From Malacoraja senta (lineage: Eukaryota): a DNA stretch of 64,000 bases. The stretch covers positions 1,612,001 through 1,676,000 of the forward strand of contig CM075981.1 of NCBI GenBank assembly GCA_038087875.1. Reading direction: 5' to 3'. Under the pieces are notes generated by a model. The model was given only the letters and a program-made list of their open reading frames with translations, was not told where the DNA came from and did not search any database. Position numbers and translations under genes: made by a program. Every line of letters begins with the position of its first letter. Positions within the stretch are counted from its first letter, which is position 1. Below are positions 5,701 through 35,912 of this stretch, piece by piece.

Positions 5701-5923
5701 ACAACAATATTTTTTGATTAAGTGATTGAATGATACAGCATGGATACAGACCATTTGGCCCACCGATTCCACGTAAACCAGCAATCAACCCTTCCACACT
5801 AATTCTATATCACCCCACTTTCGCGTCTTTTGAGTACAGTAATATTGATATACATTTTAATGCTGCAACGAGTTATTCATTTTGTCTACCGTACAAATGA
5901 GTTAAAGGACAAAAATAAAGGCC

Positions 5924-6120
5924 ACGATGGCGCAACGGTAGAGTTGCTGCCGCACAGCGCTTGCATCGCCGGAGACCCGGGTTCGACGTGTATGGAGTTT
6001 GTACGTTCTCCCCGTGATCGCATGGGTTTTCTTCGATATCTTCCGCCTCCTCCCACACTCCAAAGACGTACAGGTATGTATGTTAATTGGCTTGCTATTA
6101 ATGAAAATTGTCCCCAGTGT
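5924..6120 (+). mobile_element. V-SINE (also ~44922-45125)
   Basis: Same head and V-domain. Confidence 0.7.
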
Positions 6121-6973: not shown

Positions 6974-7654
6974 ACTTCCTCACGCCAGCTTCCTGTTTTG
7001 CCCCTTGTCCCCAGTAATATGCCACAACAAAAGTTCCAATTATTATATTTTTAATCTGCCGGTCCACTTACAAAATCAACGAGAAGAAATGATCCGAAGT
7101 TTACACATCTTAGACGTTTCTACTCTTCTAAATGTCATATTTTATCCAATGTATCATTGTTTACAAGAAGGGTCCCGACCCGAAACATCACCTATCGATT
7201 TTCTCCAGAGATGCTGCCTGGCCCGCAGAGTTCCTCCTGCATTTTTTTTGTCTAGCATTATTTCCACCACTGTTCAGTGTTAACAGACTCTGAGTACAGA
7301 GATAATCACAGCTCCATCCTTACGGATACATCACACTTGACGAAGTGGTTGAAGCAGCAGCAATAACAACATCTAACGAGCATTGGACAGGTCCATGTAA
7401 GGGGAAGGTTTGGGGAGTTTCGGGTTTAAATGTGGGAAAATCTAACTAACTTAGATATGCACATTGGTCTAACGCGTTGGGGAGAAGGGCCTGTTTCCGT
7501 GACGTATGACTCTGTGATCATCTGACCCAACCATTTGTTAAATATAACCCTGATCCTTTCACACTGTAACGTGTGGAGCTGCTGCTGGCTCGCTGTGGTT
7601 CAGGATCTGAAGTCCTGTTCCCTTCTTCGTCATTGCTATTTGAGAGATGCGGTT
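6974..7654 (+). promoter_or_regulatory. Candidate haematopoietic promoter/enhancer motifs upstream of the gene A ATG
   Basis: ACTTCCTC (PU.1/ETS GAGGAAGT, minus strand) at 6974-6981, CTTCCTGT (ETS) at 6989-6996, RUNX-type TGTGGTT at 7594-7600 and TGCGGTT at 7648-7654. Short motifs only. Confidence 0.3.
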
Positions 7655-7720
7655 GTATCTGAGAGCTACGAGCTGAGCGACAGACAGACAAGTGCTGGCC
7701 TCGTCACTGTGGATAAAACA

Positions 7721-7757
7721 ATGTGGATTCCCATTCTTCTCATCTCCTCGCTGCCGG
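7721..7757 (+). CDS. Gene A exon 1, signal peptide [12 protein letters not shown](G)
   Basis: aaaacaATG start, hydrophobic leader resembling CD300-family MWLP..LPG leaders, phase-1 donor G|gtgagt. Confidence 0.85.
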
Positions 7758-10700
7758 GTGAGTGAAAGCCAGATCCGGATATTCCAATGATCAATGTTAT
7801 TTGGGGTCTCATGCACCCTTTCCACAGCAGAGATAGTTAAGTATGTGTAGACATGTAATGGGGGAGATGCAACTCAGTGCATTGTGGTGATGGATCTGAA
7901 ATCACATTTGAATATCTAGACTATGTTCGTAGTTTAACCACTGTTGACACGGTCTAATTGCATCCTGGTGATAGTTTATAGGCATAAAATAGCAAATGAA
8001 TTTGGAGCAGATACTCCAAGATACCTGGACCGAAGGACAGAGGTTACAACATCACCAGGAAGTTAATTCTACACCTTTTAAATGTGTTTACAACTGGGGG
8101 GGGGGGGTGGTCGGGATTGTGGACTCATTGTATCAGTTCAAATATTCCCTGCATTTGTCCAACTCAACTCTGTCGCAAACCCAACAATTCCCCGCAGTCT
8201 GAGACTGAACCACTGTTCTCGCTCTATCCACCCACCCCCAACTCTCTCTCCATCCTCTTTCCAATCCGCAACCCAGTCGCGCTAAAATGCAAGTTCAGGT
8301 TATTGTCACGTGTACCGAGGTACAGTGAAAAGCTTTTTGTTGCGTGCTAATCAGACAGATACATGATTATAATCGATCCTCTTACAGTGCATAGATACAT
8401 GAAAGGGAAATAAAGTGTAAGGTAAAGCCAGCGAAGTCCGATCAAGGGTATTCCGAGGGTCACCAAAGAGGTAGATAGTTCAGCACTGCTCTCTGGTTGT
8501 GGTAGGATGATACTGATGTGTGAGTGCAACTGGAAAGGAACTGTCCCCGAATCTGGCGGTGTGCGTTTTCACGCTAGTAACGCTCTCCGGTAATATACCC
8601 GCATTATTGTAACTCGTCCGTCCTCAGTGTCCTCAGTCAGGGCTTTATAAAGGCAGTGGCGGCGGTGAATGTCTAAACACGGGTCCGGCCCAGTGTCGGT
8701 TGAGAGATAAATGTTTCCGGGACATCTGGGCACCGCCTGGGGTTGAATACATCCTTGACAAGTATTGTAACATAGTTGTATAGTTGTTTATTTCGTTTAT
8801 TTGTTTGTCTTGTATTATGGTGGTGGGTTCTGTTTTGTTTTATTGTATCGTCAATATTATTTTCAATAATTAAATAAATTATTTGATAATATTTTTTTTT
8901 TAAACACGTGTCCGGCCCAGTGTCGGTTGAGAGATGAATGTTGGCTGCGCAGCCGGCGGCACCGCCAATTAAATAGCAAAGTGGGGTCTTTCTTTAGGGT
9001 GAGAGGCCGGGCACCGCCTGGGATTGTTGGAAGGCAGCTCCTGCAACACTGCCGCGCTCCCTCAGAACCGCACTGCGATCCCAGCCCAGTTTCTGCTCAG
9101 GGATCTGGAGTGGGAAGTGAACCCAAATTGTACTGAGCCGCGGACAGAACATTGACACAACTGGTACAATAACAGCACTGTCTGCACTTCAGACCGGAGA
9201 CATTGGTCGTGAAGCAATATGACACATTATGGAACGTTTTACGTTTTCTTTCATGTAATCTTCAAAATGTATCAATTACCATTAAACAGTTAATTTGCTC
9301 TCCATCTGAAAGTTTCTCCGCTCAGTTTCAGGTGCAGTGTGGGCAGAGTGGGAAGTAAAAGGAGTTGTGGGAAGAGAGATCACAATCGATTGTCACTATG
9401 CAGCAGAGTACCGCTCACACACAAAATACTGGTGCCGTGGGAGGAGTCGATCGTGTAGAGTTTTAGTGGAAACAAATGGGCAACACGGACGGAGTGGAAG
9501 AGTGTCAATCACAGATAACCCGGCACGAGGAATATTTATTGTGACTGTGGAGGATCTTCACTCGGAAGATACAGGATGGTACAGCTGTGGAATTTCAACA
9601 TCAGCCGACCATCCAATATTTAACGTTTTACTCGAAGTATCTGACGGTATGTTTCGCAGCGAATGACTTGACGTCTCCAGCAGAAAGACAATACAGGATT
9701 ACAATCGATCCTCTTACAGTGCATAGATACATGAAAAGGAAATTACGTTTAGTGTAAGGCGAATCCAGCAAAGTCCGATCAAGGGTAGTCCGAGGGTCAT
9801 CAAAGAGATAGATAGTTCCGCACTACTCTCTGGATGTGGTAGGATGATTCAGATGCCTGACAACAGCTGTGAAGAAATTGTCCCCGAATCTGGCGGTGTG
9901 CGTGTTCACGCTAGTAACGCTCTCCGGTAAGGGACCTGGAGGTGGGTGGTGAGTGGGCGAGTGGTGAGTGGGTGAGTGGTTGGGTGAGTGGGCAGATGCA
10001 TGGCAGATGAAGTTTAATGTGGATAAATGTGAGTTTATCCACTTTAGTAGCAAAATCAGGAAGGCAGATTATTATCTGAATGTTGTCAGGTTGGGAAAAG
10101 GGGAAGTACAAAGAGATCTGGGGGTCCTTGTTCATCACTCACTGAAAGTAAGCATGCAGGTACAGCAGGCAGTGAAGAAAGCTAGTGGCATGTTGACCTT
10201 AATAACAAGAGGAGTTGAGTACAGGAGCAAAGAAGTCCTTCTGCAGTTGTACATGGCCCCAGTGAGACCACACCTGGATTATTGTTTGCAGTTTTGATCT
10301 CCAAATTTGAGGAAGGACCTTCTTGCTATCGAGGGAGTGCAGTGTATGTTGAGGGAGTGCAACAAGGTTAATTCCCGGGATGGCGGGACTGTCATCTGTT
10401 GATTGAATGGTGCGGGTGCGCTTGTATACTCAGGAATTTAGAAGGATGAGATGGGATCTTATTGAAAAATATAAGATTATTAAGGGATTGGACACGCGAG
10501 AGGCAGGAAACTTTTTCCCGATATTAAGAATAATGGATAGGCCATTTAGAACGGAGATGAGGAAAAACGTTTTCACCCAGAGAGTTGTGAATCTGTGGAA
10601 TCATCTGCCTCAGAAGGCAGTGGGGGCCGATTCACTGGATGCATTCAAAAGAGAGTTAGATAGAGCGCTTTGGGCTAGCGGAATCAAGGGGTATGGGGAA

Positions 10701-13700
10701 AGGCAGGAACGGGGTACTGATTGTGGATGATCAGCCATGAACACATTGAATAGCGGTGCTGGCTCGAAGGGCTGTATGGCCTACACCTGCACCTATTGCC
10801 TATGTATCTATGTATCTCTTTATCTATGTCTGTATCTACAGTTCCTTGTGTCTCCACCTCTGATATTGAAAAGCAAGACCAATCAAATATTCAGCAAGAG
10901 AACACTATACCCGTTAGAGTAACTGGGCGCAGTGGTTTCCTGCTGATTGTTATCGGGTGTTACATTTGTATTTGAAGTGAACCCTACTGATGTTAACGAC
11001 TCACGAATAGATTTAGGTTCTGTTGAGATAAGGAAATAAAAGACAATTAAAGATAGACAAAAAAATGCTGGATTAACTCAGCGAGACAGGCAGCATCGCT
11101 GGAGAGAATGAATGGGTAACGTTTCGGGTCTGAGCATGGGTCTCGACCCGAAACGTCAGAGCGAGAGAGTTAGATGGAGCTCTAAAAGATAGCGGCGCTA
11201 TGGGATATGGTGAGAAGGTAGGAACGGGGTACTGATTGTGGATAATCAGCCATGATCATAGTGAATGTCGGTGCTGGCTCGAAGGGCCGAATGGCCTACT
11301 CCTACCACTGTTGTCTCTTATCTCTTGACCAGCTTTATTGTAACCCGTCTGTCCTCCGTTCTCAGTCAGGGCTATGTAAAAGCAGTGGCGGCGGTGAATG
11401 CCTAAACACGGGTCCGGCCCAGTGTCTGTTGAGAGATGAATGTTGGCAGCGTAGCCGGCGGCACCGCCAATGAAATAGCAAAGTGAGGTATTTCTGCAGG
11501 GTGAGAGGCCGGGCACCGCCTGGGATTGTTGAAAGGCAGCTCCTGCAACACTGCCGCGCTCCCTCAGTACCGCACTGCGATCCCAGCCCAGTTTCTGTTC
11601 AGGGATCTGGAGTAGGAAGTGAACCCTAATTGTACTGACCCGGCGACAGAACACTGACACAACAGGTACAATAACAGCACTGGCTGCACTTCAGACCGGA
11701 GACATTGGCCGTGAAGCAATATGACACATCGTGGAACGATTTAAGTTTTCTTTCATGTAATCTTCAAAATGTATCTATTTCCATTAAACAGTTCATTTGC
11801 TCTCCATCTGAAAGTTTCTCCCCTCCATTTCAGCTGCAGTGTGGGGAGAGACGTATGTAAGAGGAGTTGTGGCAAGAGCGATCACAATCGATTGCCACTA
11901 TGCAGCAGAGTACCGCTCACACACAAAATACTGGTGCCGTGTGCAGAGTCGCCAATGTACGGATGTGGTGGACACAAATGGGCAACAAGGACGGAGTGGA
12001 AGAGTGTCAATCACCGATAACCCGGCACGAGGAATATTTACTTTGACTGTGGAGGATCTTCACTCTGGAGATACAGGATGGTACAGGTGTGGAATTACTA
12101 CATCTAACGGCCGTCCAATGTTAAACGTAGAACTCCAAGTATCTGACGGTACGTTTCGCAGCGATTGACTTGTCGTCTCCACTGAAGTGCCTGATCAATG
12201 TATTCTCCGGGAAGGGTCAGGGCAGCACCGATATCCCGAGGCTCGGCAGCAGTGCAGAGACCTGTGGGGAGCGGGCGGGGGTCGGGAAACCGCACTCATT
12301 TTGCTCTCACCCTGTGCGGGGTCTGCCCCATTGAGCGGCCACCCACTTAGAAACATAGAAACATAGAAAATAGGTGCAGGAGGAGGCCATTCGGCCCTTC
12401 GAGCCAGCACCGCCATTCATTGCCATCATGGCTGATCGTCCCCAATCAATAACCTATGCCTGCCTTCTCCCCATATCCCTTGATTACACTACACCCTGGA
12501 GCTCTATCTGACTCTCTCTTAAATCCATCCAGTGATTTGGCCTCCACTGTCCTCTGTGGTAGTGAATGCCACAAATTCACAACTCTCTGGGTGAAAACGT
12601 TTTTTCTCACCTCTGCCTTAAATGGCCTCCCCTTTATTCTAAGACTGTGGCCCCTGGTTCTGGACTCGCCCAACATTGGGAACACTTTTCCTGCATCTAG
12701 CTTGTCTAGTTCTTTTATAATTGTATGTCTTTCTATAAGATCCCCTCTCATCCTTCTAAACTCCAGTGAATACAAGCCTAGTCTTTTCAATCTCTCCTCA
12801 TAAGACAGACCCGCCATCCCAGGGATCAATCCCGTGAACCTATGCTGCACTGCCTCAATCACAAGGATGTCCTTCCACAATTAGGAGACCAAAACTGTAC
12901 GCAATACTCCAGATGTGGTCTTTCCAGAGCCCTATACAACTGCAGAAGAACCTCTCTACTATATTGAAATCCTCTTGTTATGAAGGCCAAAATTCCATTA
13001 GCTTTCTTCACTGCCTGCTGTACCTGCAAGCCAACTTTCAGTGACCAGTGTACAAGGAAACCCAGGTCTCGCTGCGCCACCCCCTTACCTAACCTAACCC
13101 CGTTGTGATAATAATCTGCCGCCTTGTTTTTGCCACCAAAGTGGATAACCTCACATTTATCTATATTATACTTCCACGCATCTGCCCACTCACTCAACCT
13201 GTCCTGGTCACCCTGCAACCTCCTAACATCCTCTTCACAGTTCACACTGCCATCCAGCTTTGTGTCATCCGCAAACTTGCTAGTGTTGCTCCTAATTCCC
13301 TCTTCCAAATCATTAATATATATGGTAAACAGTTGCGGCCCAAACACCGAGCCTTGCGGCACTCCACTCGCCACTGCCTGCCATTCTGAAAAGGACCCGT
13401 TCACTCCTACTCTTTACTTCCTGTCTGCCAACCAATTTTCTATCCACGTCAACACCCTACCCCCAATACCAATCGCTCTAATTTAAGTCACCAGTCTCTC
13501 GGGCGGGTCCTTATCAAAGGGTTTCTGAAAGTCTAGATATCCTACATCCACTGGCACCACTTCATCCATTTTACTTGTCACATCTTCAAAAAATCCAGAA
13601 GATTAGTCAAGCATGATTTTCATAAATCCATGCTGACTTGGACTAATCCTTTTACTGTTATCGAAATGCCCCATTATTACCACTGTAATAATTGACACCA

Positions 13701-16700
13701 GCATCTTTCCCACCACCGAAGTCAGGCTAACTGGTCTATAATTCCCCGTTTTTTCTATCGCTCCTTTTTTGAAAAGTGGAATTTAACTTCTCATTCACTT
13801 CACTTTTCACTTAAAGTGGAATGCTCAGCACATTTCCCTTCCTCTGAACTGTATGAAATGTCACCCTGTCAGAAGTTTGCATTTCGACTCAAACTAATAA
13901 TCCGACAGATCAGTGAGAAACAAGTGTTGCTCGCGGTCTGAATACCCCGGGAGTTTAAAAAATCAGTCCCCAGAGCTCAATAGACTGCGATCAGTCCTCC
14001 CGTGGTAGGCCATCCCGCTTCCCGCCCCCACCTCAGGGATCAGTCATTCCCTCCCAAACCCCGCGCTCTCTCTCTCTCCCTCTGCCCCATCAATGCGCCC
14101 CCATCTCCAGCAGCCACCGTCCACCCACCGCCCGGCAGTCAGCCAACCTCTCCACCCGGACATTTCCCCGGTGTTAAGCAGAATAAACTCATCTTTCACC
14201 CCATCAGCCGTCGCACACAACACATAATCCTCCAACATTTTCGCCACCTCCAACGGGATCCCACTACTAGACACATCTTTCCATCTCCACCGCTATCTGC
14301 TTTCCGAAGAGACCGTTCCTTCCGTAACTCCCTGGTCAACGTCCATCCCCCCCCCCCCCCCCAAAAAAAACCATCCTCTCCCCAAGTACCTTCCCCGACA
14401 ACTGCAGGAGATAGATCACCTGTCTCGATACCTCCTTCCTCTACTCCGTCCAAGGTCTCCAACAATCTTTGCGGGTGAGGATTGACTAGCATCTCCTCCA
14501 AGCTCACCTACTACATCCGCTGTTCCAGGTGTGAACTACTGTATATCGGCGAGACCAAGCGCAGACTCGTCGATCGTTTCGCTGATTAACTCCGCTCAGT
14601 CTGCTTCGGCCGACGCTACTTCCCGATTGCTAAACACTTTAATTCCCCCTCCCATCCCCAAACTCAACTTTCTGTCCTGGACCTCCTCCACTATCCAACG
14701 TAAATAGGAGGAAAAGCACCTGGGAAACTTACAACCCATCGGTTTGAATATTGACTTCTCTAACTTCAAGGAACCCTTGCTTTACTCCTGTCCCCATCCC
14801 GCCACCATCCTAGCTCTCCAGTTAGTTGCACAGTCAAACTGATTTTATTTTACTTATTGTATGCCTCGTTGTCACCTTCCTTCAGCTCACAATGATCCAT
14901 TGTCCATTTTCTTTTCACCTTTGATCACTTGTTTTCACACCTTACCTTTCCATTTATCTTCTGTCTCCCTGTCCCATGATTCTCAGGCTGAAGATGGGTC
15001 TCGACAGGAAACGTCACCCATTCCGTCTTTCGAGAGATGCTGCCTGCTCGTTGCGTTACTCCAGCATTTTGTGTCTATCTTAAAGGGATCGTAATTCGTT
15101 TTCCACAGCAGAGATGGTTAAGTGTGTGTAGACATGTAATGGGGGAAATGGAACTCAGTGCATTGTGGTGCTGGATCTGAAATCACACTTGAATATCTAC
15201 ACAATGTTCGTAGTTTAACCACTGTTGACACATGGTCGAAATACATCCTGACGATAAATGAAAGGCTTAAAATAGCGAATAAATTTGAAGCAGATACTGC
15301 AAGACACCTGGACCGAAGGCGAGAGGTTCCAACGTCATCTGGAAGTTAATTCTACACTTTTAAAATGTGTTTACCAAGGAGGTGGAAGTCAGGATTGTGG
15401 ACTCATTGTGTCAGTTCAAACATTCCCTGCATTTGTCCAACTCAACTCTGTCGCAAACCCAACAATTCCCCGGAGTCTGAGACTGAACCACTGTCCTCGC
15501 TCTATCCACCCACCCCCAACTCTCTCCCATCCTCTCTCGGATCCGTGGCCCAGTCGTGCTGAATTGTCCATGGCGAGCCGGGGTCATTGGGAATAAATCC
15601 TGTCCCAGATGAGCAGCGGGACATTGGGCTCACAATTCAGTTTAGTTTATTATCACGAGTACCGAGGTACAGTGAATCTGGCGATGTGCGTTTTCACGCT
15701 AGTAACGCTCTCCAGTAAGGACCCGCTTTATTGTAACCCGTCCGTACTCAGTCAGGGGGTTGTAAAGGCAGTGGCTGCGGTGAATTTCTAAACACGGGTC
15801 CGGCCCAGTGTCGGTTGAGAGATGAATGTTGGCAGCGCCGAAACTGATATAGCAAAATGGGGTCTTTCTGAAGGGGATAGGCCGGGTATCGCCTGGGATT
15901 GTTGATAGGCAGCCCCTGCAACACTGCCGCGCTCCCTCAGTGCCGCACTGCGATCCCAGCCCACTTTCTGCTGAGGGATCTGGAGTGAGAAGTGAACCCA
16001 AATTGTACTGACCAGGGGACAGAACACTGACACAACTGATACAATAACAGCACTGCCGCACTTCATACCGGATACATTGGTCGTGAAGCAATATGACACA
16101 TCATGGAACGATTATGTTTTTCATGTAATCTTCAAAATGTATCTATTACCATTAAACAGTTCATTTGCTCTCCATCTGAAAGTTTTTCCCCTCCATTTCA
16201 GCTGCAGTATGGGGAGAGAGGAATGTAACAGGTGTTGTGGGAAGAGCGATCACAATCGATTGTCACTATGCAGCAGATTACCGCTCAAACACAAAATACT
16301 GGTGCCGTGGGTGGAGTCGCCAATGTACAGATATGGTGGAAACAAATGGGCAACACGGACGGAGTGGAAGAGTGTCAATCACAGATATATCGGCACTAAG
16401 AATATTTACTGTGACTGTGGAAGATCTTCACTCTGGAGATACAGGATGGTACAGGTGTGGAATCACAGCATCCACCGAACATCCATTGTTTCCCGTATAT
16501 CTCCAGGTATCTGACGGTACGTTTCGCAGCGATTGGCTTCATGTCTCCACTGAAATGCCTGATCCATGTTTTCTCCGGGAAGGGTCAGGGCAGCACCGAT
16601 ATCCCGAGGCTCCGCAGCAGGGCAGAGACCTCCGGGGAGCGGGCGGGGGTCGGGAAACCCCACTCATGTTTGCTCGCACCCAGTGCGGGCTCTGTCCCAC

Positions 16701-19700
16701 TGAGCGGCCACCCACTTCAAGACACTCAACACATTTCCCTGCCTCTGAATTGTATGAAATATCACCCTGTCAGAGGTTTGCATTCCGACAAATTAATAAC
16801 CCGACAGATCAGTGAGAAACAAGTATTGCTCGCCGTCTGAATACCCGGAGAATGATAAACAGGGAATCATTCCACAGAGCTCAACAGACTGCGTTCAGTC
16901 CTCCCGGGGCAGGCCAGCCCGCTTCCCGCCCCCACCTCAGGGATCAGTCACTCCCTCCCCATCCCGCACACTCTCTCTCTCCCTCTGCCCCGTCAATGCG
17001 TCCCCACTGCCAGCAGCCATTGTCCACCCATCGCCCGCCAGCCAGCCAGCCTCTCCTCCCGGACATTTCCCCGGTCGTAAGCAGAATAAACTCATCTTTC
17101 GCCCCATCAGCCGTCGCACACAGCATATAATCCTCCGACATTTGCGCCACCTACAATGGGATGCCACAACTAGCCACATCTTTCTATCTCCATCGCTTTC
17201 TGCGTTCCCTCCGCAACTCCCTGGTCAACTCGTCCTCACCCCCACCCCACTCCCCACCCCCCACCCCCGTCCCGTTACCTTCCCCTACAACTGCGGGAGA
17301 TGCAACACCAGTCACTATATATCCCCCCTCTACTCCGTCCATGGGCCTCAACAGTCTTTTCGGGTGAGGCAGAGGGTTCCTTGCATCTCCTCTAACCTCA
17401 TCTACTCTATCCGCTGTTCCAGATGTGAACAAGCGGATATAGTAGATGGGAGACCAAGCGCAGACTCGGCGATCGTTTCGCTGAACAACTCCGCTCAGTC
17501 TGCCTCGGCCTACGCTACATCCCGATTGCTAAACACTTTTATTCCCCCTCCCATTCCCAAACTGATCTTTCCGTCCTGGACCTCCTCCAGTGTCAGAGTG
17601 AGGCCAAAGGCAAATTGGAAAAACAGCGCCTCATATTTCGCTTGGGCAGCTTACAACCCAGCGGTTTGAATATTGACATCTCTAACTTCAAGTAACCCTT
17701 GCTTTACTCCTTTCCATCCCGCCCCCATCCGAAACCTCCAATTAGATTCACCTGATAATATTTTACTGATTGTATGCCTCGTTGTCACCTTCCCTTCAGC
17801 TGACAATTATTCATTCTACATTTCCCTTTAACATTGTCACCTTTTATCACTTGTTTTAACATCTTACCCTTCCATTTCTCTTCTGTCACCCAGAACATGA
17901 CTGTCAGGCTGGAGAAGGGTCTCGATCCGAAACTTCACCCACTCCTTCTCTCGAGAGATGCTGCCTGCTCCGCTGAGTTCCCCCAGCATTTTGTGTCTCT
18001 CTTAAAGCGATCGTAATTAGTTTTCGCGATTAAATTACAAGGCATTGAATTGTGTTTTTGGCACGCTGGTCTTCATCAGTGAGAACATTCAGAATATAAT
18101 TTGAGATAATATGCTTCAGACGTGCAGATGTTCAGTCCACACTTTGGGAATTGTGTTCAGCTTCAGTCACTCAGCTCCAAGAAAATTTGAGATGGACAGC
18201 GTGCAGAAAGGTTTTTGGGCGACGTTGCTGGACAGGATGGGAATGACGCAGGGAGCGATTGGACAAACTCAGACTTCATTCCTTAGTGTGGAAATGATTG
18301 AGAGAGGAACTTATAGAAATGTATCAATCACGAGAAGCATGTTCATTTTCCCACGATGTGTGGAATCAAAAAGTGGAGGACAGAGGTAATTGGGAACTAT
18401 TTAAAGAGGGAGGAATAGTAAGGTGCAATTGACCGTAATGGCATGTTTTGTACAGATGAGTGGCCGAAGCTGAACACAATTCGCACAAGTTCGACCTCAG
18501 CAACATATGTACAACTGAAACATAACATCCCAACATATGTTCTGAGGGACAACATTTTCCACACATTGGGTAATATGTACATGGAACCTGCTGCCAGGGG
18601 AAGTTGTTGAGGCAGTTAGAATAGCAGCATTTAAAATATATTTTGGATATTTGCGTAGATTGGGATCATTGCGAGTGATAAATGAGAAACGCGGACATAT
18701 GGAAATGTCATAGAAAGACATGTTGGTCGGCATGAATGAGCTGTTGTGATGGGCATCTTTCGGTTCTCTATAACTCTAATCTTCTTCGATTTATGTGCTT
18801 CGCACACTCCCAGAGATGTAGACGAGCCGGTAAGGTATCAACCGGACGGTTCGGGCTGAGATAAAGTGCTGCTGAGATTTAGCAAGTGTTTGGTTTTTAA
18901 CCTTTCATACAGGTGACTGAATGTTTGCTCCATTCCCACAGAACCCTTGTCTGCTCCTGTGCTCAGGTATCTGTCAGCAGCAAATGCCTCACGTCTTGGA
19001 GGCTCAGTGTCAGTGTCCTGTGAGTCTCTCCGTGGATCCCTTCCCATCCATTACACATGGTTTGAGAAGAACGAGCATTGGGTTGCAATGATCTTGAAAG
19101 GCAATCAACTGGATCTGAGTTGTGAAATCCTCAGAGGTGAACACCTTCGATATTACTGCACAGCCTCAAATAATCGTGGGACAAAATCCAGTGAAATAGT
19201 CACGGTGAAAGTCTTCAAAGGAGCAGGAACGTGCAGTTATGTGACCGAAATGAACAATGCAGGTGAGTGTTCCTCTCGTGTCCCTGAACCTGCTGCTATT
19301 CGCCTTGCGGTAATGTTCATGTATTTCTTGTTATTTGCAGACGGCATCATTGCAGCCACCGTGAGCTCATGGTGTAAAATGCGAGAGTTTGTTTGGGGGA
19401 CTGGCAAACAATTGCCCGTAGCTTCCACCATGGAGGTGTTGCGCAATTTCAGCAAAGGAGAGAAAGACATGCACTTGTCACAAAGGGTTGAGTGCACTCC
19501 ATCAAATTTCTGCCTTCTGCCTTAAAAATGCCGCTTGGCTGCCGCTTAAGGTCTCACAGTCTCTTTGAGACATTGAAAGCAACCAAATGCATTCTGTTTG
19601 GATCCGCCATCATTTACAATCAAGGATGTACAATTTCATGATCATGTTCATGATTTTAACTGTTAATTTGTGTTAAACTCCAGTAATATCACTAAATTAA

Positions 19701-25700: not shown

Positions 25701-28700
25701 GATGAAGTACGAGGGGAAGCTGGCCAGGAATATAAATAAGGATAGTAAAAGCTTCTTTAGAAAATGTTAAGGGAAAAAGAGTAGCAAAATTTGATGTGGG
25801 TCCCTTGAAACCAGACATGGGTGAAATTATTATGGGGAACAAGGAAATGACAGAGGAGTTGAACAGGTACTATGGATCTGGCGTCACTAAGGAAGACACA
25901 AACAATCTCCCAGAAGTACTGGAGGACAGAGGATCAAAGGGGGTAGAGGAACTGAAAGAAATTATCATTAGGCGAGAAATAGTATTGGGTGGGCTAATGG
26001 GACTGAAGGATGATAAATCCCCTGGGCCTGATGGTCTGCATACCAGGGTCCTCAGGGAGGTGGCTCTAGAAATAGTGGACGCATTGGTGATCATTTTCGA
26101 ATGTTCAATAGATTCAGGATCAGTTCCTGTGGATTGGATGATAGCTAATGTTATCCCACTTTTCAAGAAAGGAGCGAGCGGGAAAACGGGGAATTACCGA
26201 CCAGTTAGCCTGACTTTGGTGGTGGGAAAGATGTTGGAGTCAATCATTAAAGAGGTAATAATGGGGCATTTGGATAGCAGTAAAATGATTAGTCCAAGTC
26301 AGCATGGATTTATGAAAGGAAAATCACGCTTGACTAATCTTCTGGAATGGTTTGAGGATGTGACAAGTAAAATGGATGAAGGGCAGCCAGTGGATGTAGT
26401 GTCACTCGACTTTCAGAAAGCCTTTGATAGGTCTCGCATGGGAGACTGGTGACTAAAATTAGAGCACATGGTACTGGTAGGGTGTTGACGTGGATAGAAA
26501 ATTGATTGGCAGACACGAATCAAAGCGTAGGAGTGAACGGGTCCTTTTCAGAATGGCATGCAGTGGCGAATGGAGTGCCGCAAGGCTCGGTGTTGGGGCC
26601 GCAACTGTTTACCATATATATTAATGATTTGGAAGAGGGAATTAGGAGCAACGCTAGCAAGTTTGCGGATGACACAAAGCTGGGTGGCAGTGTGAACTGT
26701 GAAGAGGATGTTAGGAGGTTGCAGGGTGACCTGGACAGGTTGAGTGTGTGGGCAGATGCGTGGCAGATGCAGTATAATATAGATAAATGTGAGGTTATCC
26801 ACTTTGGTGGCAAAAAAAAGGGGGCAGATTATTATCTCAATGGGGTTAGGTTAGGTAAGGGGGAGGAACAGCGAGACCTGTGTGTCCTTGTACACCGGTT
26901 ACTGAAAGTTGGCGTCCAGGTACAGCAGGCAGTGAAGAAAGCTAACAAGAGGATTTCAGTACAGGAGTAGAGTGGTTCTTCTGCAGTTGTATAGGGCTCT
27001 GTTAAGACCACATCTGGAGTATTATGTACAGTTTTGGTCTCCTAATTTGCGAAAGGACATCCTTGTGATTGAGGCAGTCCAGCGTAGGTTCACGAGATTG
27101 ATCCCTGGGATGGCGGGACTGTCTTATGAGGAAAGATTGAAAAGACTAGGCTTGTATTCACTGGAGTTTAGAAGGATGAGGGGGTATCTTATAGAAACAT
27201 ATAACATGCTTTTTATTTTTTAAAGACTGGACAAGCTAGATGCAGGTAAAATGTTCCCAATGTTGGGCGAGTCCAGAACCAGGGGCCACAGTCTTAGAAT
27301 AAAGCGGAGGCCATTTAAGACTGAGGTGAGAAAAAACGTTTTCACCCAGTGAGTTGTGAATTTGTGGAATTTCCTGCACAGAGGACAGTGGAGGCCAAAT
27401 CACTGGATGGATTTAAGAGAGAGTTAGATAGAGCTCTAGGGGCTAGTGGAACCAAGGGATATGGGGAGAAGGCAGGCATGGGTTATTGAGTGGGGGCGTT
27501 CAGCCATGATCACAATGAATGGCGGTGCAATGATAGGGCCGAATGGCCTCCTCCTGCACCTATTTTCTATGTTTCTATGTTTCCATGTTTCCATGTTTCT
27601 ATAGGGCGTTCCCTGCGGTATTCACCATGACTTCTCCATCACTAACCTCACCCCATGGTGTGAGATGAGTATAGTTGCCAAACACAACTACTGCTGCTTT
27701 GCCTTGCAGTGACCTGCTCTAGTGTGGTACTGATAGGAAAATGCATAGTGAATTATGGGCTAAATCACCAACTTGCGGAGTTGGTCAAATTCTCAATGTC
27801 AGGCATTCCAACAGCAGGAAGTGTCTCCACCTAGAACGTGACCCTGTGTGGTAGGCACGTTAAGTCACACTGCTGACCTTGAGATGGTCATGGTGAGCTG
27901 CCTTCTGAAGATGTTCCATATTGCAGACAGCTCTAAACGAACAGTCAATGTCCAAACCAATGTTGGTGGATGTGGAGATGGAGTTGTGAATGGCATTGGG
28001 GTGAGATTTGTGGAATGAAGTGCATTGTTTTCTCTTTGGCATGGTGTTCTCTCCACCGAGGTTGGAACAGGGTTGTAGAACCGCGCTCACAACGTGGTGG
28101 TTTCAAGGATAGCTGCAAATATTTGGGTAAATCCCTCAGATACCACACCACTGCAGTACTGAGGGAGGGCAGCGTGCTAGCTGTAAGATATGAAAACTCC
28201 ATTAACAGTGGCATGGTGGGACAGCGATATAGTTGCTGCCTTATTGCCCCAGAGACTTATGTTCGATCCTGACTCCTGTTGCTGTCTGTTCGGAGTTTGT
28301 TCCTTCTCTCAGAGACCACGTGGGTGTTCTCCAGGTGTTCCAGTTTTCTCCCACATTCCAAAGACGTGCAGGTTTGTAGGTTAATTGGCTTCTGTAAATT
28401 GTCTCTAGTGTGTAGGGTAGATCTAATATATGGTGATTACTGGTCGACGCAGATTTGGTGGGCCGAAAGTCCTGTTTACATGCTGTATCTCTAAAATAAA
28501 TTAAATTAACAACAATACAATTTATTTGTCTTTTTTGTCTTTTGGACAAATTTTTCATTTGGACCCCGTTGAGGTCCAAACGAAATGTCGTTTCTGCAGC
28601 CATACATTACAAAACGAAGAAGACCCGAGACACAACACAATTTACACATACATTCCAGCGCTGTGATGGAAGGCAAAAAAACGTATCTCTCCACTGCACT

Positions 28701-31700
28701 CCCCCCCCCCCCCCCCCCGCCCACCATGTCAGAGTCAAAGTCAAAGCCCCCGGCGGGCGATTATCCCGCGGCCATTAAAGCCACGCCGCTTAATGCAAGG
28801 TCGCGCACCGGGTCTTGGTGTTAGAGCCCCGGCGCGCGCTCGCAAAGTCCGGCGGCCATTCCAAGCCGTGCGGGGCGACGATGTAAAGCCCCGCTCCAGG
28901 TGCTCTTCAACCCCGCAACTCGGGCGGGAGAAGTCGCCGCTGCGGAAGCCCCGAAAAGCGGTCTCCCACCAGGGGACCCGCGGGCTTCCGGTGTTGCCGT
29001 CCGCCAGACCCGCGGTTGTAGCCTCCGAATCTCCGGGGGTCGGGAAGCAGCAGCGATTGTCTCCACCACAGCTCCACCCGCTCCGGACTCGGCCAGCCCC
29101 GCGACGGTGAGTAGTCCGCAGCTCCGCAACTGGAGCCCCAGGTCGTTCCTGCTGGAGGCCGCTCCACGTTGCCCAGCCCCAACGACAACGGAGACCCGAC
29201 AAAGAAAAGGTCGGGTCTCCCGTGCAGGGGAAAGATTTTAAAGTCCCCCCCCCACCCCCACCCCCACCCTCCCACACACATACCCCGACAAAAAAAAAAA
29301 AAAAAAACTACATAAAAACGAGACAAAAATAATAAAGAGACAGACGGACTGCAGAGGCCGCTGCAAACGAGTCGCGCCGCCCACCGTTGGATGATAAACT
29401 AAACTAAACTAAACCAAACTCAGCTGAACTAAACTAAAGTAATCATTGCTATTAATGTGTAACAGTTCCCATGCATTGTTTGTGAAGGAGGAGGGAGGGT
29501 TCCTTAATGTTTGGGCGCAATTGCTCTTGAACCAGTTTCATGATCGTTGGTCAATGTCACCTTACTGTGAGCAGATTAGCTGCTGCGTTACTCACCGAAA
29601 CAGACTCTACACCTCATCTCCTTTGCTGCATACTTCAAAAAAATCATGAAAGGTGCCATATAAATTGTTGACTTTTGTTCTTTACTGAAGGCCAAGAATC
29701 AATGATGAGCCATATCTCACCCTTCCCTATTCTCTGTCCGACAGGATCACTTACATAGTTGCGTCTGGTGTCGCTGTGCTTCTCCTGATTCTCATCATTG
29801 CCTTCTTTTGGTACCAAAAGCGTAAAACCAAGGGTGAGTTTCTGATTTCCCTTAAATAATTTCACAATACTTGTCTCAGTTCCCTCCAGAATGTCAAGAG
29901 ATTTAATTCTGATCTAATCAACAAATGCCCTGCATTAAAGTAATACAGTGTTGGAGGAAGCATGGATGATCAATAATGCTATCACGTTTGATGCTATAAT
30001 GGTGACTCGGTGACAAAAACTATTATTTTAACATCATTGTACTTAAACTGTCTGAGTGTGAAATGGCAGAGATGCGTGAGAACTAAGAGGCTAGGTAGAA
30101 GTAAGATTTACATCGATACTCTCATCCTCTCAGCTGTTAGAATATGCTTCGTGTGATTAGCTGTTGTATTTCAAATCAGATTAAGTCGTGTTTATTGTCA
30201 CATGCACAAGCATGATGAAGCACTGTTACAATGAAGATCACACCTGCAGCCTTACAGGGACATAAACAACGTACAACATACCTGCCTCACACAGAGGGCG
30301 GTGGGTATATGACAGGAGCTGCCAGAGGAGGTAGTTGAGGCAGGGCAGGTCTAGCCTGGACAGGTAATCCAAGATGTGAACACCCATGAACTTGAAGCTG
30401 CCAACTATCTTCACTGCCGATGAAAATGTGAAAGTTCACTGAGCTGTTCCTCAGTCAGAGAGCATTAGTGGAAAGTAAAACAGTAAACATTTCACATCCA
30501 AGACCCATTACAACAGGGAAAGAGGGAAAAGAGGGGGGAACCTCATTGAAAGATCAAATAGTGAAAGGCCTAGATACAGTAGATGTAGAATGGATGTAGA
30601 AGGGACTCAAATAGAGAATGCTATTAGACAGTGTGTGAGGCAGGAGGCAGAGAAGGAAAGCACTCAGGCCCAACATGTAGGGGGGAAAGAAGAAAACAAT
30701 AATAAAAAGAGAATAAGAGGTGGTGGGGTTCTTAAATGTGTGAGCAGAGAAACAGAGGGGTGTCAAATGCGGGCGGAAGCAATAGGTAGCAAGGTGAAAA
30801 GTAAAAGTGGCAGGCAGACAAATCCAGGGCAAAAATCAAAAAGAGCCACTTTTCAACATAATTGTATAAGGGGTAAGAGCGTTGTAAAAACAAGCCTGAA
30901 GACTTTGTGTCTCAATGCAAGGAGCATTCGTAATAAGGTGGATGAGTTGAACATGCAGATAGCAATTAATGATTATGATATAGTTGGGATAACGGAGACA
31001 TGACTCCAGGGTGACCAAGGCTGGGAGCTGAACATCCAGGGATATTCAATATTCAGGAGGGATAGAGAGAAAGGAAAAGGAGGTGGGGTAGTGTTGCTGG
31101 TTAGAGAGGAGATTAACGCAGTGGAAAGGAAGGACATTAGCTTGGAGGATGTGGAATCGGTATGGGTAGAGCTGCGAAACACTAAGGGGCAGAAAACGCT
31201 GGTGGGTGTTGTGTACAGGCCACCTAGCAGTAGTAGTGAAGTTGGGGATGGCATCAAACAGGAAATTAGAAATGCGTGCAACAAAGGCAAAACAGTTATA
31301 ATGGGGGACTTCAATCTACATATAGATTGGGTGAATCAAATTGGCAGGGGTGCTGAGGAAGAGGATTTCTTGGAATGTATGAGGGATAGTTATCTAAACC
31401 AACATGTAGAGGAACCAACGAGAGAGCAGGCTATTCTAGACTGGGTATTGAGTAATGAGGAAGGGTTAGTTAGCAGACTTGTTGTGCGTGCCCCCTTGGG
31501 CAAGAGTGACCATAATATGGTTGAGTTCTTCATTAGGATGGAGAGTGACATTGTTAATTCAGAAACAACGGTTCTGAACTTAAAGAAAGGTAACTTTGAG
31601 GGTATGAGACGTGAATTGGCCAAGATTGACTGGCAATTAGTTCTAAAAGGGTTGACGGTGGATATGCAATGGAAGGCATTTAAAGACCGCATGGATGAAC

Positions 31701-34700
31701 TACAAAAATTGTTCATCCCAGTTTGGCAAAAGAATAAATCAGGGAAGGTAGTGCATCCGTGGATAACAAGGGAAATCAGGGATAGTATCAAAGCAAAAGA
31801 TGATGCGTACAAATTAGCCAGAAAAAGCAGCATACCAGAGGACTGGGAGAAATTCAGAGACCAGCAGAGGAGGACAAAGGGCTTAATTAGGAAAGGGAAA
31901 ATAGATTATGAAAGGAAACTGGCAGGGAACATAAAAACTGACTGCAAAAGTTTTTATAGATATGTGAAGAGAAAGAGATTAGTTAAAACAAATGTAGGTC
32001 CCTTGCAGTCAGAAACAGGTGAATTGATGATGGGGAACAAGGATATGGCGGACCAATTGAATAACTACTTTGGTTCCGTCTTCACTAAGGAAGACATAAA
32101 TAATCTGCCGGAAATAGCAGGGGGCCGCGGGTCAAAGGAGATGGAGGAACTGAGTGAAATCCAGGTTAGTCGGGAAGTGGTGTTGGGTAAATTGAATGGA
32201 CTAAAGGCCGATAAATCACCAGGGCCAGATAGGCTGCATCCCAGAGTACTTAAGGAAGTAGCTCCAGAAATAGTGGATGCATTAGTGCTAATTTTTCAAA
32301 ACTCTTTAGATTCTGGAGTAGTTCCTGAGGATTGGAGGGTAGCAAACGTAACCCCACTTTTTAAGAAGGGAGGGAGAGAGAAAACGGGGAATTACAGACC
32401 AGTTAGTCTAACATCGGTAGTGGGGAAACTGCTAGAGTCAGTTATTAAAGATGGGATAGCAGCACATTTGGAAAGTGGTGAAATCATTGGACAAAGTCAG
32501 CATGGATTTACGAAAGGTAAATCGTGTCTGACGAATCTTATAGAATTTTTCGAGGATGTAACTAGTAGAGTGGATAGGGGAGAACCAGTGGATGTGTTGT
32601 ATCTGGACTTTCAGAAGGCTTTCGACAAGGTACCACATAAGAGATTAGGATACAAACTTAAATCACACGGTATTGGGGGTTCAGTATTGATGTGGATAGA
32701 GAACTGGCTGGCAAACAGGAAGCAAAGAGTAGGAGTAAACGGGTCCTTTTCACAATGGCAAGCAGTGACTAGTGGGGTACCGCAAGACTCAGTGCTGGGA
32801 CCCCAGCTATTTACAATTTATATTAATGATCTGGACGAGGGAATTGAAAGCAACATCTCCAAGTTTGCGGATGACACTAAGCTGGGGGGCAGTGTTAGCT
32901 GTGAGGAGGATGCCAGGAGACTGCAAGGTGACTTGGATAGGCTGGGTGAGTGGGCAAATGTTTGGCAGATGCAGTATAATGTGGATAAATGTGAGGTTAT
33001 CCACTTTGGTGGCAAAAACGGGAAGGCAGACTATTATCTAAATGGTGGCCGATTAGGAAATGGGGAGATGCAGCGAGACCTGGGTGTCATGGTACACCAG
33101 TCATTGAAAGTAGTCATGCAGGTGCAGCAGGCAGTGAAGAAAGCGAATGGTATGTTGGCCTTCATAGCAAGAGGATTTGAGTATAGGAGCAGGGAGGTTC
33201 TACTGCAGTTGTACAGGGTCTTGGTGAGACCACACCTGGAGTATTGCGTACAGTTTTGGTCTCCAAATCTGAGGAAGGACATTATAGCCATAGAGGGAGT
33301 GCAGAGAAGGTTCACCAGACTGATTCCTGGGATGTCAGGACTGTCATATGAAGAAAGACTGGATAGACTTGGCTTATACTCGCTAGAATTTAGGAGATTG
33401 AGAGGGGATCTTATAGAAACGTACAAAATTCTTATGGGGTTGGCCAGGCTAGATGCAGGAAGATTGTTCCCGATGTTGGGGAAGCCCAGGACAAGGGGTC
33501 ACAGCTCAAGGATAAGGGGGAAATCCTTTAAGACCGAGATGAGGAAAAACTTTTTCACACAGAGAGTGGTGAATCTCTGGAACTCTCTACCACAGAGGGT
33601 AGTTGAGGCCAGTTCATTGGCTATATTTAAGAGGGAGTTAGATGTGGCCCTTGTGGCTAAGGGGATCAGGGGGTATGGAGAGAAGGCAGGTACGGGATAC
33701 TGAGTTGGATGATCAGCCATGATCATATTGAATGGCGGTGCAGGCTCGAAGGGCCGAATGGCCTACTCCTGCACCTATTTTCTATGTTTCTATGTTTCTA
33801 TTAGTGGGATAGTCTAGGACCAGAGATCATAACTTCAGAATTAAAGGACATTCCTTTATGATGGACATGAGGAATAATTTAGTTCGTCAGAGGGTGATGA
33901 ATCTGTGGAATTATTTGCCACATAAGGCTGTGGAGCCCGTCAATAGATATTTTAAGGCATAGATAGATTCTTGATTCGTACAGGTGCCCTGGATTATGGA
34001 GGGAAGGCAGGAGAAAGAGGTTAGGAGGGAGAGATAGATCAGCCATGGTTAAATGGCGGAGTAGATGGATGGGCTGCATAGCTTTATTCTACTCTTATCA
34101 CTCATGAACTTATGAAAACCTTTTGAAGCAGATTAGGTTAGGGTGATGGACACAAAATGCTGGAGTAACTGAGCGAAACAAGCAGCATCTCTGGAGAGAA
34201 GTAATGTGTGATGTTTTAGGTCGAAACTCTTTTTCAGACTGATGTCAGGCGAGTGGCAGTACTGACATAAAGTATAGTCGGACACAGTAAGACTGGTCAG
34301 AGAACTTCGAAGGGGGAGTGGATGGAGGGAGGGAAAGCAAGGGCTACTTGAAGTTAGAGAAGTCAATGTTCATACCGCTGGGGTGTAACCAGCCCAAGGA
34401 AATATGAGGTGCTGTTTCTCCAATTTGTGCTGGGCCTCACTCTGAGAATGGATGAGGCCCAGGACAGAATGGTTAGTGTGGGAATGGGAGTAGGAGTTAA
34501 AGTGTTGATCAACCGGGAGATCAGGTAGGTTTAGGCAGCTTCAGTGTGAGATGGGGTAGAGTACAGGGAATATGATCCATTCTGAACATTACGTATAGTA
34601 ACCAAAACAACAGGGCAGATTCTTACTCCATACGTGCAAATATACTGCAGTGCCTTTGGGGTTCTCCTAAATATAAGGTCGTGGCAACAACACGTAGATG

Positions 34701-35912
34701 TTTGTGTGTTGGAAGGAACTGCAGATGGTGGTTTACACTGAAGGTAAACATAAAATGCTCTAGAAATTAGCGGGTCAGGGGCGACATTTTGCCAGCAGCG
34801 CAACAGAAAATCATCAAATATAGTAGTTCTCAGCTTAGCTGGATAAAAGAAACAGATTGAGTATGTGTGTATGTGTATATATACACACTGAACTTATTTT
34901 TCTCTCCCGTTATGTACTATGTCTACATATTCTGTTGTGCTGCAGCAAGTACGATTGTCATTGTTCTATCTGGGACATATGACAATAAAACACTCTATAC
35001 TCTTGAAAAGGAACAGTTGACGTTTCAAGGCGAGACCCTTCTTCAGACTGAGAGTCAGGTGAAAGGGAAACAAGAGATATAGAAGGTACATGGAACAAAT
35101 GAATGAAATATATGAATGAATGATGTTTAAACCTGTTCATAATATGGCTCTATCGACAACATATTTTCCAGAATCCAAGTGCAATACATCACACGGTGAA
35201 GACAACAATGAAATCCAGGTAAAAATGTGAAATATAAATTCTCTGAGTGATGAAAAATATATAATATTGAATTATCTGTGTTTACACAGGCCATTTAGCA
35301 ACACCAGTCCACTCCAGTTAAGAGAACCAGCACAGAAACTGGCCCTTTGGCCCACCGAGTCCACGCCGACCGGTGACCCACGCACACAAAAACTATCCTA
35401 CGCACACTAGGGACAATTTGCAATTATGCCAAACCAATTAACCTACAAACATGTTGTAGGCACTGTCAGGCAACAACTCTACCGCTGCTCCACCATGCTG
35501 CGCTATCTTTGTGTTGTAAACAGCAGCAATGGCCTGTTCTGTACACTGAACAGTTTGAGACCTACTTTGTAATAGACATCTGTTGAGGACCTTTCAAATC
35601 TATTAGGTTGTAAAATGGGATTTTGTTATATTTTAGGAAATGGCAGTGTTGGAAGGGAACCACGTTGATGCAAATCTGCAGCAAATTGGAAACAACAGGG
35701 CAGCTGACCATTTGGATAACAATGAAGGTGGAATCACATATGCAGTGGTGAAATGTCAAAGGAAGTCGAGATCAAGGCACCCTGAGACTCACAACACTGT
35801 TCTCTACGCAGATGTTAATTTTCATCGCAACTGCCCAAAGGGCAATCGGAAACCCCACTCTACTAGGGCTCCAGAGAACTCTGAAACAATTTATGCCTCT
35901 GTTGTTTCTTAG
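7721..35912 (+). CDS. Gene A: 11-exon inhibitory Ig-superfamily receptor, L-V-V-V-C2-V-C2-stalk-TM-cyt (CD300/pIgR-like V domains; MDIR-like), 798 aa
   Basis: join(7721-7757, 9332-9646, 11834-12148, 16202-16516, 18942-19262, 20514-20825, 22023-22343, 23634-23682, 29745-29833, 35172-35218, 35637-35912) = 2397 nt. All introns GT-AG, phases compatible (1,1,1,1,1,1,1,2,1,0), no internal stop. No transcript evidence available. Confidence 0.85.
9332..9646 (+). CDS. Gene A V-set Ig exon V1
   Basis: tttcag acceptor, g|gtatgt donor, 315 nt. Motifs [32 protein letters not shown] (four-Cys CD300/pIgR pattern). Confidence 0.95.
9981..10840 (+). mobile_element. 5'-truncated CR1 fragment in intron V1-V2 (also 48985-49844 in copy B)
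   Basis: [10 protein letters not shown]...RPHLDYC...[11 protein letters not shown]-terminal CR1 ORF2 motifs with frameshifts; microsatellite tail. Confidence 0.9.
11834..12148 (+). CDS. Gene A V-set Ig exon V2
   Basis: tttcag acceptor, g|gtacgt donor, 315 nt; same four-Cys V motifs ([18 protein letters not shown]). Confidence 0.95.
12349..13785 (-). mobile_element. 5'-truncated CR1 fragment in intron V2-V3 (also ~51353-52783 in copy B)
   Basis: Minus-strand [14 protein letters not shown] and RPHLEYC motifs; agaaacat repeats (tail) at the left end. Confidence 0.92.
13990..15082 (+). mobile_element. Penelope-like element fragment (also ~52990-53965)
   Basis: [43 protein letters not shown] and YIGETKRRL-like GIY-YIG remnants. 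Confidence 0.8.
16202..16516 (+). CDS. Gene A V-set Ig exon V3
   Basis: tttcag acceptor, g|gtacgt donor, 315 nt; [18 protein letters not shown]; N-V-T sequon. Confidence 0.95.
16870..18005 (+). mobile_element. Penelope-like element fragment (internally deleted copy at ~55770-56525)
   Basis: Paralogous to 13990-15082; [10 protein letters not shown]...[12 protein letters not shown] remnants. Confidence 0.8.
18942..19262 (+). CDS. Gene A C2-type Ig exon C2a
   Basis: ccacag acceptor, g|gtgagt donor, 321 nt. [18 protein letters not shown]...YYCTASN...SSE resembles FCRL/PECAM-type C2 domains. Confidence 0.92.
20514..20825 (+). CDS. Gene A V-set Ig exon V4
   Basis: tttcag acceptor, g|gtaggt donor, 312 nt; [18 protein letters not shown]. 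Confidence 0.95.
22023..22343 (+). CDS. Gene A C2-type Ig exon C2b
   Basis: ccacag acceptor, g|gtaagt donor, 321 nt; [18 protein letters not shown]...YYCTASN. Confidence 0.92.
23215..23435 (-). mobile_element. V-SINE, minus strand (similar element at ~61900-62090)
   Basis: Reverse complement of the head and V-domain. Confidence 0.65.
23634..23682 (+). CDS. Gene A stalk micro-exon (G)[15 protein letters not shown](R)
   Basis: ttgttccaacag acceptor, ag|gtaaac donor, 49 nt. Supplies exactly the phase 1 to 2 shift needed to join C2b to the TM exon; conserved in copy B at 62278-62326. Confidence 0.85.
23910..24960. mobile_element. Penelope-like element remnant with internal inversion
   Basis: Minus-strand GIY-YIG and 3' end (~24000-24770), plus a plus-strand RT C-terminal piece ([24 protein letters not shown]). 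Confidence 0.75.
25135..25545 (+). mobile_element. Old CR1 3'-end fragment
   Basis: Degenerate [12 protein letters not shown]...RVVNLWN homology, cttatgac tail; absent at the orthologous site in copy B (~63000). Confidence 0.7.
25681..27601 (+). mobile_element. 5'-truncated CR1 (RT region), present in copy A only
   Basis: [33 protein letters not shown]; (tttctatg/tttccatg)n tail. Flanks are contiguous in copy B near 63140. Confidence 0.92.
28208..28500 (+). mobile_element. V-SINE
   Basis: Same head, V-domain and gctgtatctctaaa end. Confidence 0.7.
28508..29390 (-). mobile_element. GC/CpG-rich non-coding repeat, probably a non-autonomous LINE derivative
   Basis: Abrupt GC-rich block inserted in a SINE (taaac)n tail; terminal stem-loop TTTGGACC-7nt-GGTCCAAA at 28558-28580 beside an (attgt)-like tail. 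Family not identified. Confidence 0.45.
29745..29833 (+). CDS. Gene A transmembrane exon [29 protein letters not shown]
   Basis: tctctgtccgacag acceptor, g|gtgagt donor, 89 nt. Uncharged hydrophobic span followed by basic stop-transfer KRKTK. Confidence 0.9.
30598..33800 (+). mobile_element. CR1-clade LINE with near-complete ORF2 (APE endonuclease + reverse transcriptase), inactivated
   Basis: LCLNARS...GITET* (TGA at 31001-31003), then the same frame continues into ORF 31091-33703: [32 protein letters not shown]; (tttctatg)n tail. Confidence 0.95.
34140..34540 (-). mobile_element. Penelope-like 3' fragment
   Basis: Reverse complement matches the 3' end and GIY-YIG tail of the other PLE copies. 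Confidence 0.65.
35172..35218 (+). CDS. Gene A cytoplasmic exon (E)[15 protein letters not shown]
   Basis: attttccag acceptor, cag|gtaaaa donor, 47 nt; phase 1 to 0 links the TM exon to the last exon in frame. Confidence 0.75.
35637..35912 (+). CDS. Gene A terminal cytoplasmic exon with ITIM-ITIM-ITSM
   Basis: tattttag acceptor. Encodes ITYAVV (35733-35750), VLYADV (35799-35816), TIYASV (35886-35903), then TAG. Confidence 0.9.
   Translation, partial: EMAVLEGNHVDANLQQIGNNRAADHLDNNEGGITYAVVKCQRKSRSRHPETHNTVLYADVNFHRNCPKGNRKPHSTRAPENSETIYASVVS

Follow-up and report, generated by a model that had tools for sequence, protein, structure and literature searches.

The MDIRs (modular domain immune-type receptors) belong to the oldest relatives known for the CD300/TREM/pIgR and Fc receptor (FcR)-like receptors, and members with one to six immunoglobulin (Ig) domains have reportedly been found. 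To our knowledge, little has been published on these receptors since 2006. They are described as a multigene family of activating and inhibitory receptors with similarity to CD300, TREM, FCAR, and pIgR (PMC3031540), and MDIR3 of the clearnose skate Rostroraja (Raja) eglanteria goes back to Cannon et al. (2006, Immunogenetics 58:362), as cited in PMC3031540. Here we analysed a 64,000-nt stretch of the genome of the skate Malacoraja senta (GCA_038087875.1, contig CM075981.1, positions 1,612,001 to 1,676,000 of the forward strand), hereafter called the window, which consists of vertebrate DNA with introns filled by long interspersed nuclear elements (LINEs). It harbors a complete receptor gene, gene A, at 7721-35912 (+), followed by a tandem paralogue, gene B. 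Gene A is an intact and apparently unannotated MDIR3-type member of a family that is itself already described, and its sole candidate novelty is an extra membrane-distal V domain that is predicted for its mRNA.

Independent reconstruction of gene A returned exactly the model of the initial annotation, i.e., 11 exons that encode a leader, the Ig domains V1, V2, V3, C2a, V4, and C2b, a 49-nt exon, a transmembrane (TM) exon, a 47-nt exon, and the cytoplasmic tail, in this order (Table 1). Every intron is bounded by GT and AG, all 20 splice sites are intact, and the spliced exons form a single open frame of 2397 nt, which encodes 798 amino acids and terminates with TAG at 35910-35912. The V1 and V4 exons each possess a second AG 6 nt upstream of the acceptor (ctcag/TTTCAG/GTG), the use of which would add the residues VS. 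As both the cDNA-derived MDIR3 protein and the model of the skate Amblyraja radiata read VSG at the V1 and V4 junctions, fitting the upstream acceptors, a product of 802 residues is more likely than one of 798. The leader of gene A is identical in gene B and at the orthologous locus of A. radiata, and matches the N-terminus of MDIR3. The C2b exon is 77-79% identical to the last C2 domain of the relatives P0003, P0001, and P0025, while the TM exon, which could also be aligned with MDIR3, is 64-73% identical to P0003 and P0001. A hydropathy scan revealed no charged residue in the TM helix. With all exons open and a tail that bears immunoreceptor tyrosine-based inhibitory motifs (ITIMs) as well as a sequence resembling an immunoreceptor tyrosine-based switch motif (ITSM), gene A answers to the earlier description of a complete gene for an inhibitory-type receptor.

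The initial annotation had also relied on the closure of the exon phases, including the shifts supplied by the two micro-exons of 49 and 47 nt. The phases are as it had given them, but their closure is weaker evidence than was implied. All six Ig exons are in phase 1-1, so any subset of them closes the frame and closure cannot show which Ig exons go together; it constrains only the 3' part of the gene (1>2, 2>1, and 1>0). For the micro-exons, comparison with other genes is more telling. The peptide encoded by the 49-nt exon shares 12 of its 15 residues with the cDNA-derived MDIR3 protein, and that of the 47-nt exon 13 of 16. Both micro-exons and their splice sites are kept in A. radiata, where the 47-nt exon has a nucleotide identity of 95.7%, and the 49-nt exon is present in gene B, too. 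The matches to MDIR3 and the kept splice sites argue that these exons are not chance picks from 13 kb of intron.

Table 1. Positions and properties of the exons of genes A and B in the window.
Feature	Position	Strand	Size (nt)	Phase	Remarks
Gene A exon 1, leader	7721-7757	+	37	0>1	First in-frame ATG and most of the signal peptide; donor CCGG/gtgagt
Gene A exon 2, V1	9332-9646	+	315	1>1	Pfam V-set, 8.6e-14; alternative acceptor at 9326
Gene A exon 3, V2	11834-12148	+	315	1>1	Pfam V-set, 3.6e-13
Gene A exon 4, V3	16202-16516	+	315	1>1	Pfam V-set, 2.5e-11; no counterpart in MDIR3 or model P0164
Gene A exon 5, C2a	18942-19262	+	321	1>1	Pfam Ig_C17orf99/Ig_2; PDB FCRL5, CD22 d6-d7
Gene A exon 6, V4	20514-20825	+	312	1>1	Pfam V-set, 4.6e-13; alternative acceptor at 20508
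Gene A exon 7, C2b	22023-22343	+	321	1>1	Pfam Ig_3, 6.9e-08, and Ig_2
Gene A exon 8, membrane-proximal stalk (micro-exon)	23634-23682	+	49	1>2	Match to MDIR3; kept in A. radiata and gene B
Gene A exon 9, TM helix and basic stop-transfer stretch	29745-29833	+	89	2>1	Hydropathy scan
Gene A exon 10, juxtamembrane cytoplasmic part (micro-exon)	35172-35218	+	47	1>0	Match to MDIR3; kept in A. radiata
Gene A exon 11, cytoplasmic tail and stop	35637-35912	+	276	0	Motif scan: ITIM ITYAVV, ITIM VLYADV, ITSM-like TIYASV
Gene B, tandem paralogue	46725-62326	+			Runs off the window end; eight 5' exons open, with GT-AG sites
Gene B leader	46725-46761	+
Gene B V1'	48336-48650	+
Gene B V2'	50838-51152	+
Gene B V3'	55092-55406	+
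Gene B C2a'	57464-57784	+
Gene B V4'	59495-59806	+
Gene B C2b'	60974-61294	+
Gene B 49-nt exon	62278-62326	+	49

Pfam assigned all four V exons of gene A to the V-set (E-values of 1e-11 to 1e-14) and the other two Ig exons to Ig_2, Ig_3, or Ig_C17orf99. Among solved structures, pIgR is closest to V1 (1.4e-59 summed over four domains), followed by CD300f/CLM-1 (4e-19), while FCRL5 is closest to C2a (7.3e-38 over four stretches), followed by CD22 d6-d7. Besides, each V domain contains four cysteines at positions 20, 34, 41, and 85, corresponding to the canonical pair and a C-C' pair, the latter being typical of CD300 and pIgR V domains. The classification of the V domains as CD300/pIgR-type and of the C2 domains as FCRL-like, as initially proposed, is borne out by these comparisons. 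Gene A nevertheless differs from each of these families as a whole. CD300 receptors carry a single V domain on a stalk and no C2 domain; their V type and the four cysteines recur in gene A, but there in four V exons that are accompanied by two C2 exons. The mammalian pIgR, which likewise shares the V type and the C-C' pair, has an ectodomain of V domains only and a non-ITIM tail with transcytosis signals, whereas gene A has interleaved C2 domains and ITIMs. FCRL5 and other FCRL proteins resemble gene A in their C2 type and ITIM tail, but their ectodomains are composed of C2 domains without any CD300/pIgR-type V domain, while four of the six domains in gene A are V-set. ITIM signaling is also found in CD300a and CD300f.

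Relatives were gathered by a library-wide phmmer search with V4 and two subsequent word-indexed searches, the queries of which included the close relatives P0003 and P0164, and the domain orders of all relatives were scored with V and C2 profiles. About 90 chondrichthyan relatives were found. Their annotations read 'polymeric immunoglobulin receptor-like', 'Fc receptor-like protein 5', or 'uncharacterized', and R. eglanteria is represented among them by 'Modular domain immune-type receptor 3' and '5'. The best match to the spliced gene A is A. radiata P0167 with 80% identity over 690 residues. MDIR3 (P0166) is 76.4% identical over 696 residues and, apart from lacking an entire V domain, follows gene A collinearly from the leader to the C-terminal residue. 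It shares with gene A the leader, the C2a-V4-C2b core, the peptides of the stalk, TM, and juxtamembrane exons, and all three tyrosine motifs of the tail, which are conserved in the A. radiata proteins as well; the third motif reads SIYASV in MDIR3 and TIYASV in gene A. In addition to the similarity to a cloned MDIR, gene A combines domains of mixed Ig subfamilies with an ITIM tail and an uncharged TM helix, and it is part of a multigene cluster, with two tandem copies in the window and several units on one A. radiata chromosome. Because it matches MDIR3 end to end and V/C2 mixing is common in its relatives, gene A falls inside the MDIR family and its interleaving is not unusual, and we assign its identity and family membership with high confidence. 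The suggestion that it might stand within or beside this family can accordingly be narrowed to the former, as the identity of 76% to MDIR3 extends to the micro-exon peptides.

In contrast, the claim of an unusual or undescribed architecture was not supported. MDIR3 and A. radiata P0167 are both V-V-C2-V-C2-TM-ITIM, and interleaving of V and C2 domains is the norm among the relatives, which come from skates, rays, sharks, and a chimaera (Callorhinchus) and exhibit arrangements such as (V-C2)x2 to x6, V-V-C2-V-C2, V-C2-V-V-C2, and V-V-V-C2. Rhinoraja longicauda P0003 (809 residues) and Leucoraja erinacea P0153 (803 residues) resemble gene A in having six Ig domains, the micro-exon peptides, and an ITIM tail, but their order is V-C2-V-C2-V-C2 instead of V-V-V-C2-V-C2. 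The initial annotation had allowed for an already annotated orthologue of the same domain order; the exact order V-V-V-C2-V-C2-TM was found in none of the about 90 annotated relatives.

Taken together, we consider it likely that gene A is an intact MDIR3-type gene in a tandem array, which encodes a type I membrane protein from CD300/pIgR-like V exons, FCRL-like C2 exons, and an ITIM tail. The array has a period of about 39 kb. The full exon set of gene A encodes a V-V-V-C2-V-C2 protein of 798 residues, or 802 with the upstream acceptors. Provided that gene A is expressed, as we infer, its membrane-distal V domains may bind a ligand. CD300 uses this V type to bind lipids and pIgR to bind polymeric Ig, and by analogy both would be reasonable first guesses for gene A. 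The tail tyrosines would then be phosphorylated by Src-family kinases, and the SH2-domain phosphatases SHP-1, SHP-2, and SHIP might be recruited to damp activating signals in leukocytes. An inhibitory role is suggested by the uncharged TM helix together with the two ITIMs and the ITSM-like motif, features that gene A has in common with MDIR3 and A. radiata.

At the P0164 locus of A. radiata (L001, CM021389.1), the 11 exons recur in unchanged order, each of them open and with intact splice sites. Its exons are 86.6-100% identical to those of gene A at the nucleotide level, and the collinear blocks, which comprise introns and exons, are about 84-92% identical. The orthologue of V3 is an intact exon with splice sites at 21089-21403 of L001. 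In a tree of V domains, V1 grouped with D1 of A. radiata P0164 and P0165 (support 99/83), V2 with D2 of P0164 (100/96), and V3 with V3 of gene B, D2 of P0167, and D3 of Leucoraja P0152 (95/94), while V4 fell into a membrane-proximal V clade with D4 of MDIR3 (100/99). As V1, V2, and V3 each group with a different V domain of A. radiata or Leucoraja, they represent old, separately kept lineages rather than the outcome of a recent local triplication.

The presence of the same 11 exons in two skate genera provides a clean cross-species gene model, and that of gene A can serve as a template for re-annotating the MDIR cluster. The current annotation of this cluster is unreliable, with one model skipping an intact exon and others being stitched across gene units. 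The NCBI models P0167, P0005, and P0165 join exons of two to three neighbouring units, three in the case of P0167, and bypass the internal leaders and tails (L002-L004, CM021389.1, 33.37-33.74 Mb). The gene units of the A. radiata cluster were also observed to vary in their exon sets, one example being leader-V1-V3like-C2b.

A modest question is whether skates produce a six-Ig receptor with three N-terminal V domains or combine their V cassettes in different ways. Judged from the exons, the six-Ig V-V-V-C2-V-C2 protein is a plausible maximal isoform, and the chances that it is one of the real isoforms appear to us about even. Several points weigh against it, or against a functional receptor gene in general. 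Cloned MDIR3 has two N-terminal V domains, compared with exons for three in gene A, and at L001 the NCBI model P0164 comprises V1 and V2 but passes over the intact V3. Moreover, searches of sequencing runs with the C2a exon and with the tail plus downstream sequence yielded the DNA runs X1 and X2 and no transcript. The X1 and X2 contigs on 16401-22400 cover introns and exons at even depth without exon-exon joints and are thus DNA; the runs X3 and X4 matched repeats only. A protein search for transcript-derived fragments with the V3 open frame (192 residues, region 1-93) identified only short annotated CD300-like proteins. Between gene A and A. radiata, the ratio of nonsynonymous to synonymous substitution rates (dN/dS) is, on small counts, 0.88 for V1, 0.49 for V2, 0.56 for V3, 1.05 for C2a, 1.10 for V4, and 0.39 for C2b; with ratios of 0.4-1.1 from few substitutions, purifying selection is not demonstrated for any single V exon. 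On the same small counts V3 does not look closer to neutrality than exons whose use is established. With too few substitutions and every exon falling within 0.4-1.1, dN/dS was dropped as a test of V3 use. Finally, the ITIM function of the tail is predicted from its motifs.

The first two of these points would suit a gene whose usual product is a five-Ig, MDIR3-like V-V-C2-V-C2 protein, with V1, V2, or, most probably, V3 being skipped and six-Ig proteins being rare or absent. This is the order of the MDIR3 cDNA protein, the annotated A. radiata products P0164 and P0167 ('pIgR-like') also have five Ig domains compared with the six Ig exons of gene A, and skipping of any phase 1-1 Ig exon would keep the frame. 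However, the splice sites of V3 are as good as those of its neighbours, the exon is open in gene A, gene B, and A. radiata, and V3-type exons are included in other annotated models, namely as D2 of P0167 and D3 of P0152. The omission of V3 from P0164 could equally reflect real exon skipping or a model fitted to the five-domain MDIR3 template, and as P0005, P0165, and P0167 are chimeric, the A. radiata annotation is poor evidence either way on the use of V3. We regard a mainly five-Ig product as quite possible, if somewhat short of an even chance. The missing transcripts, the dN/dS values near 1 for several exons, and a dead V pseudo-exon in the same array would in turn fit a copy that, as one of many in a large family, is unexpressed or decaying. 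This is very improbable, as both gene A and its A. radiata orthologue have kept the 11 exons, the 20 splice sites, and the three tyrosine motifs undamaged, whereas the true pseudo-exon in the array looks different, having lost its acceptor and part of its 3' end and acquired a frameshift. The X1 and X2 contigs furthermore showed mismatches to the window at about 1-3% of positions; because the variant letters occur at full depth, these contigs derive from another individual, haplotype, or close paralogue.

We also considered that V1, V2, and V3 may be alternative cassettes, so that one gene would give rise to several receptors with different membrane-distal V domains. All Ig exons are phase-symmetric, each V exon of gene A starts with GA(V/L)WAE, i.e., the residues that follow the leader, the three V exons are distinct old lineages, and many V/C2 combinations occur in the annotated relatives. 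Much of this annotated variety, however, stems from different gene units or chimeric models and not from splicing, and we consider such a splicing-based repertoire unlikely. If it were true, cassette use, gene conversion, and the loop-focused divergence between V3 and V3' would together provide skates with paired innate receptors whose repertoire is based on the germline and on splicing. V3 and V3' (16202-16516 and 55092-55406) differ at 15 of 104 residues with a dN/dS of 0.74; four of the differences lie in a stretch resembling complementarity-determining region (CDR) 1 (residues 25-30) and six in a CDR3-like stretch (90-97), while the framework is nearly unchanged. As a separate observation on possible isoforms, read-through of the C2b donor at 22344-22358 gives G-K-stop after INGT, and the relatives P0004 and P0005 end right after C2b with VTSHGKWGAGC.., which resembles intron read-through. 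Retention of this intron or loss of its donor may thus produce secreted forms.

Self-comparison of the window revealed a tandem repeat of about 39 kb, in which 1-23900 matches 38636-62563 with 79-99.3% identity. The identity between the two copies is a mosaic, amounting to 99.27% over 5183-14614, 94% near V3, 97.5% near C2a, 90.6% over V4-C2b, and 79% beyond. In their V1 and V2 exons, genes A and B show no difference at all (100% identity). Such near-identity of the 5' halves might be taken for an assembly artefact, and the exons could likewise be distributed over two or more shorter genes; both are highly unlikely. Had a haplotype been duplicated by accident, near-identity should extend throughout the copies, unlike the mosaic seen here; the same tandem layout exists in A. 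radiata, and each 39-kb unit contains a single leader and one set of TM and tail exons. The mosaic thus fits true paralogues subject to gene conversion better than a duplicate created during assembly, and its pattern suggests that conversion acted over the 5' half.

Roughly 4 kb upstream of each leader lies an orphan V4-like pseudo-exon, at 42761-43054 and 3850-4139. The former was rejected as an extra 5' exon, since its acceptor AG is changed to AT, one cysteine of its extra disulfide is replaced by arginine, and its 3' end is truncated without a donor; the copy at 3850-4139 is also frameshifted. The same V relic is found in A. radiata at 4126-4434 of L001, together with a C2b-like remnant. 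The intron that separates the TM exon from the 47-nt exon contains a LINE at 30590-33800 (+) with an uninterrupted frame of 870 residues for an endonuclease and a reverse transcriptase (31091-33703). This element is missing from the orthologous A. radiata intron, where its flanks abut at about 33090 of L001, and the insertion is hence specific to this lineage and may be recent. LINEs of this type have also left older fragments at 9978-10830 (+), 12349-13782 (-), and 25715-27600 (+). In the intron just upstream of the TM exon, the region 28500-29330, which may be a CpG-rich island or a simple repeat, is rich in G+C, with runs of G or C and many overlapping open frames on both strands.

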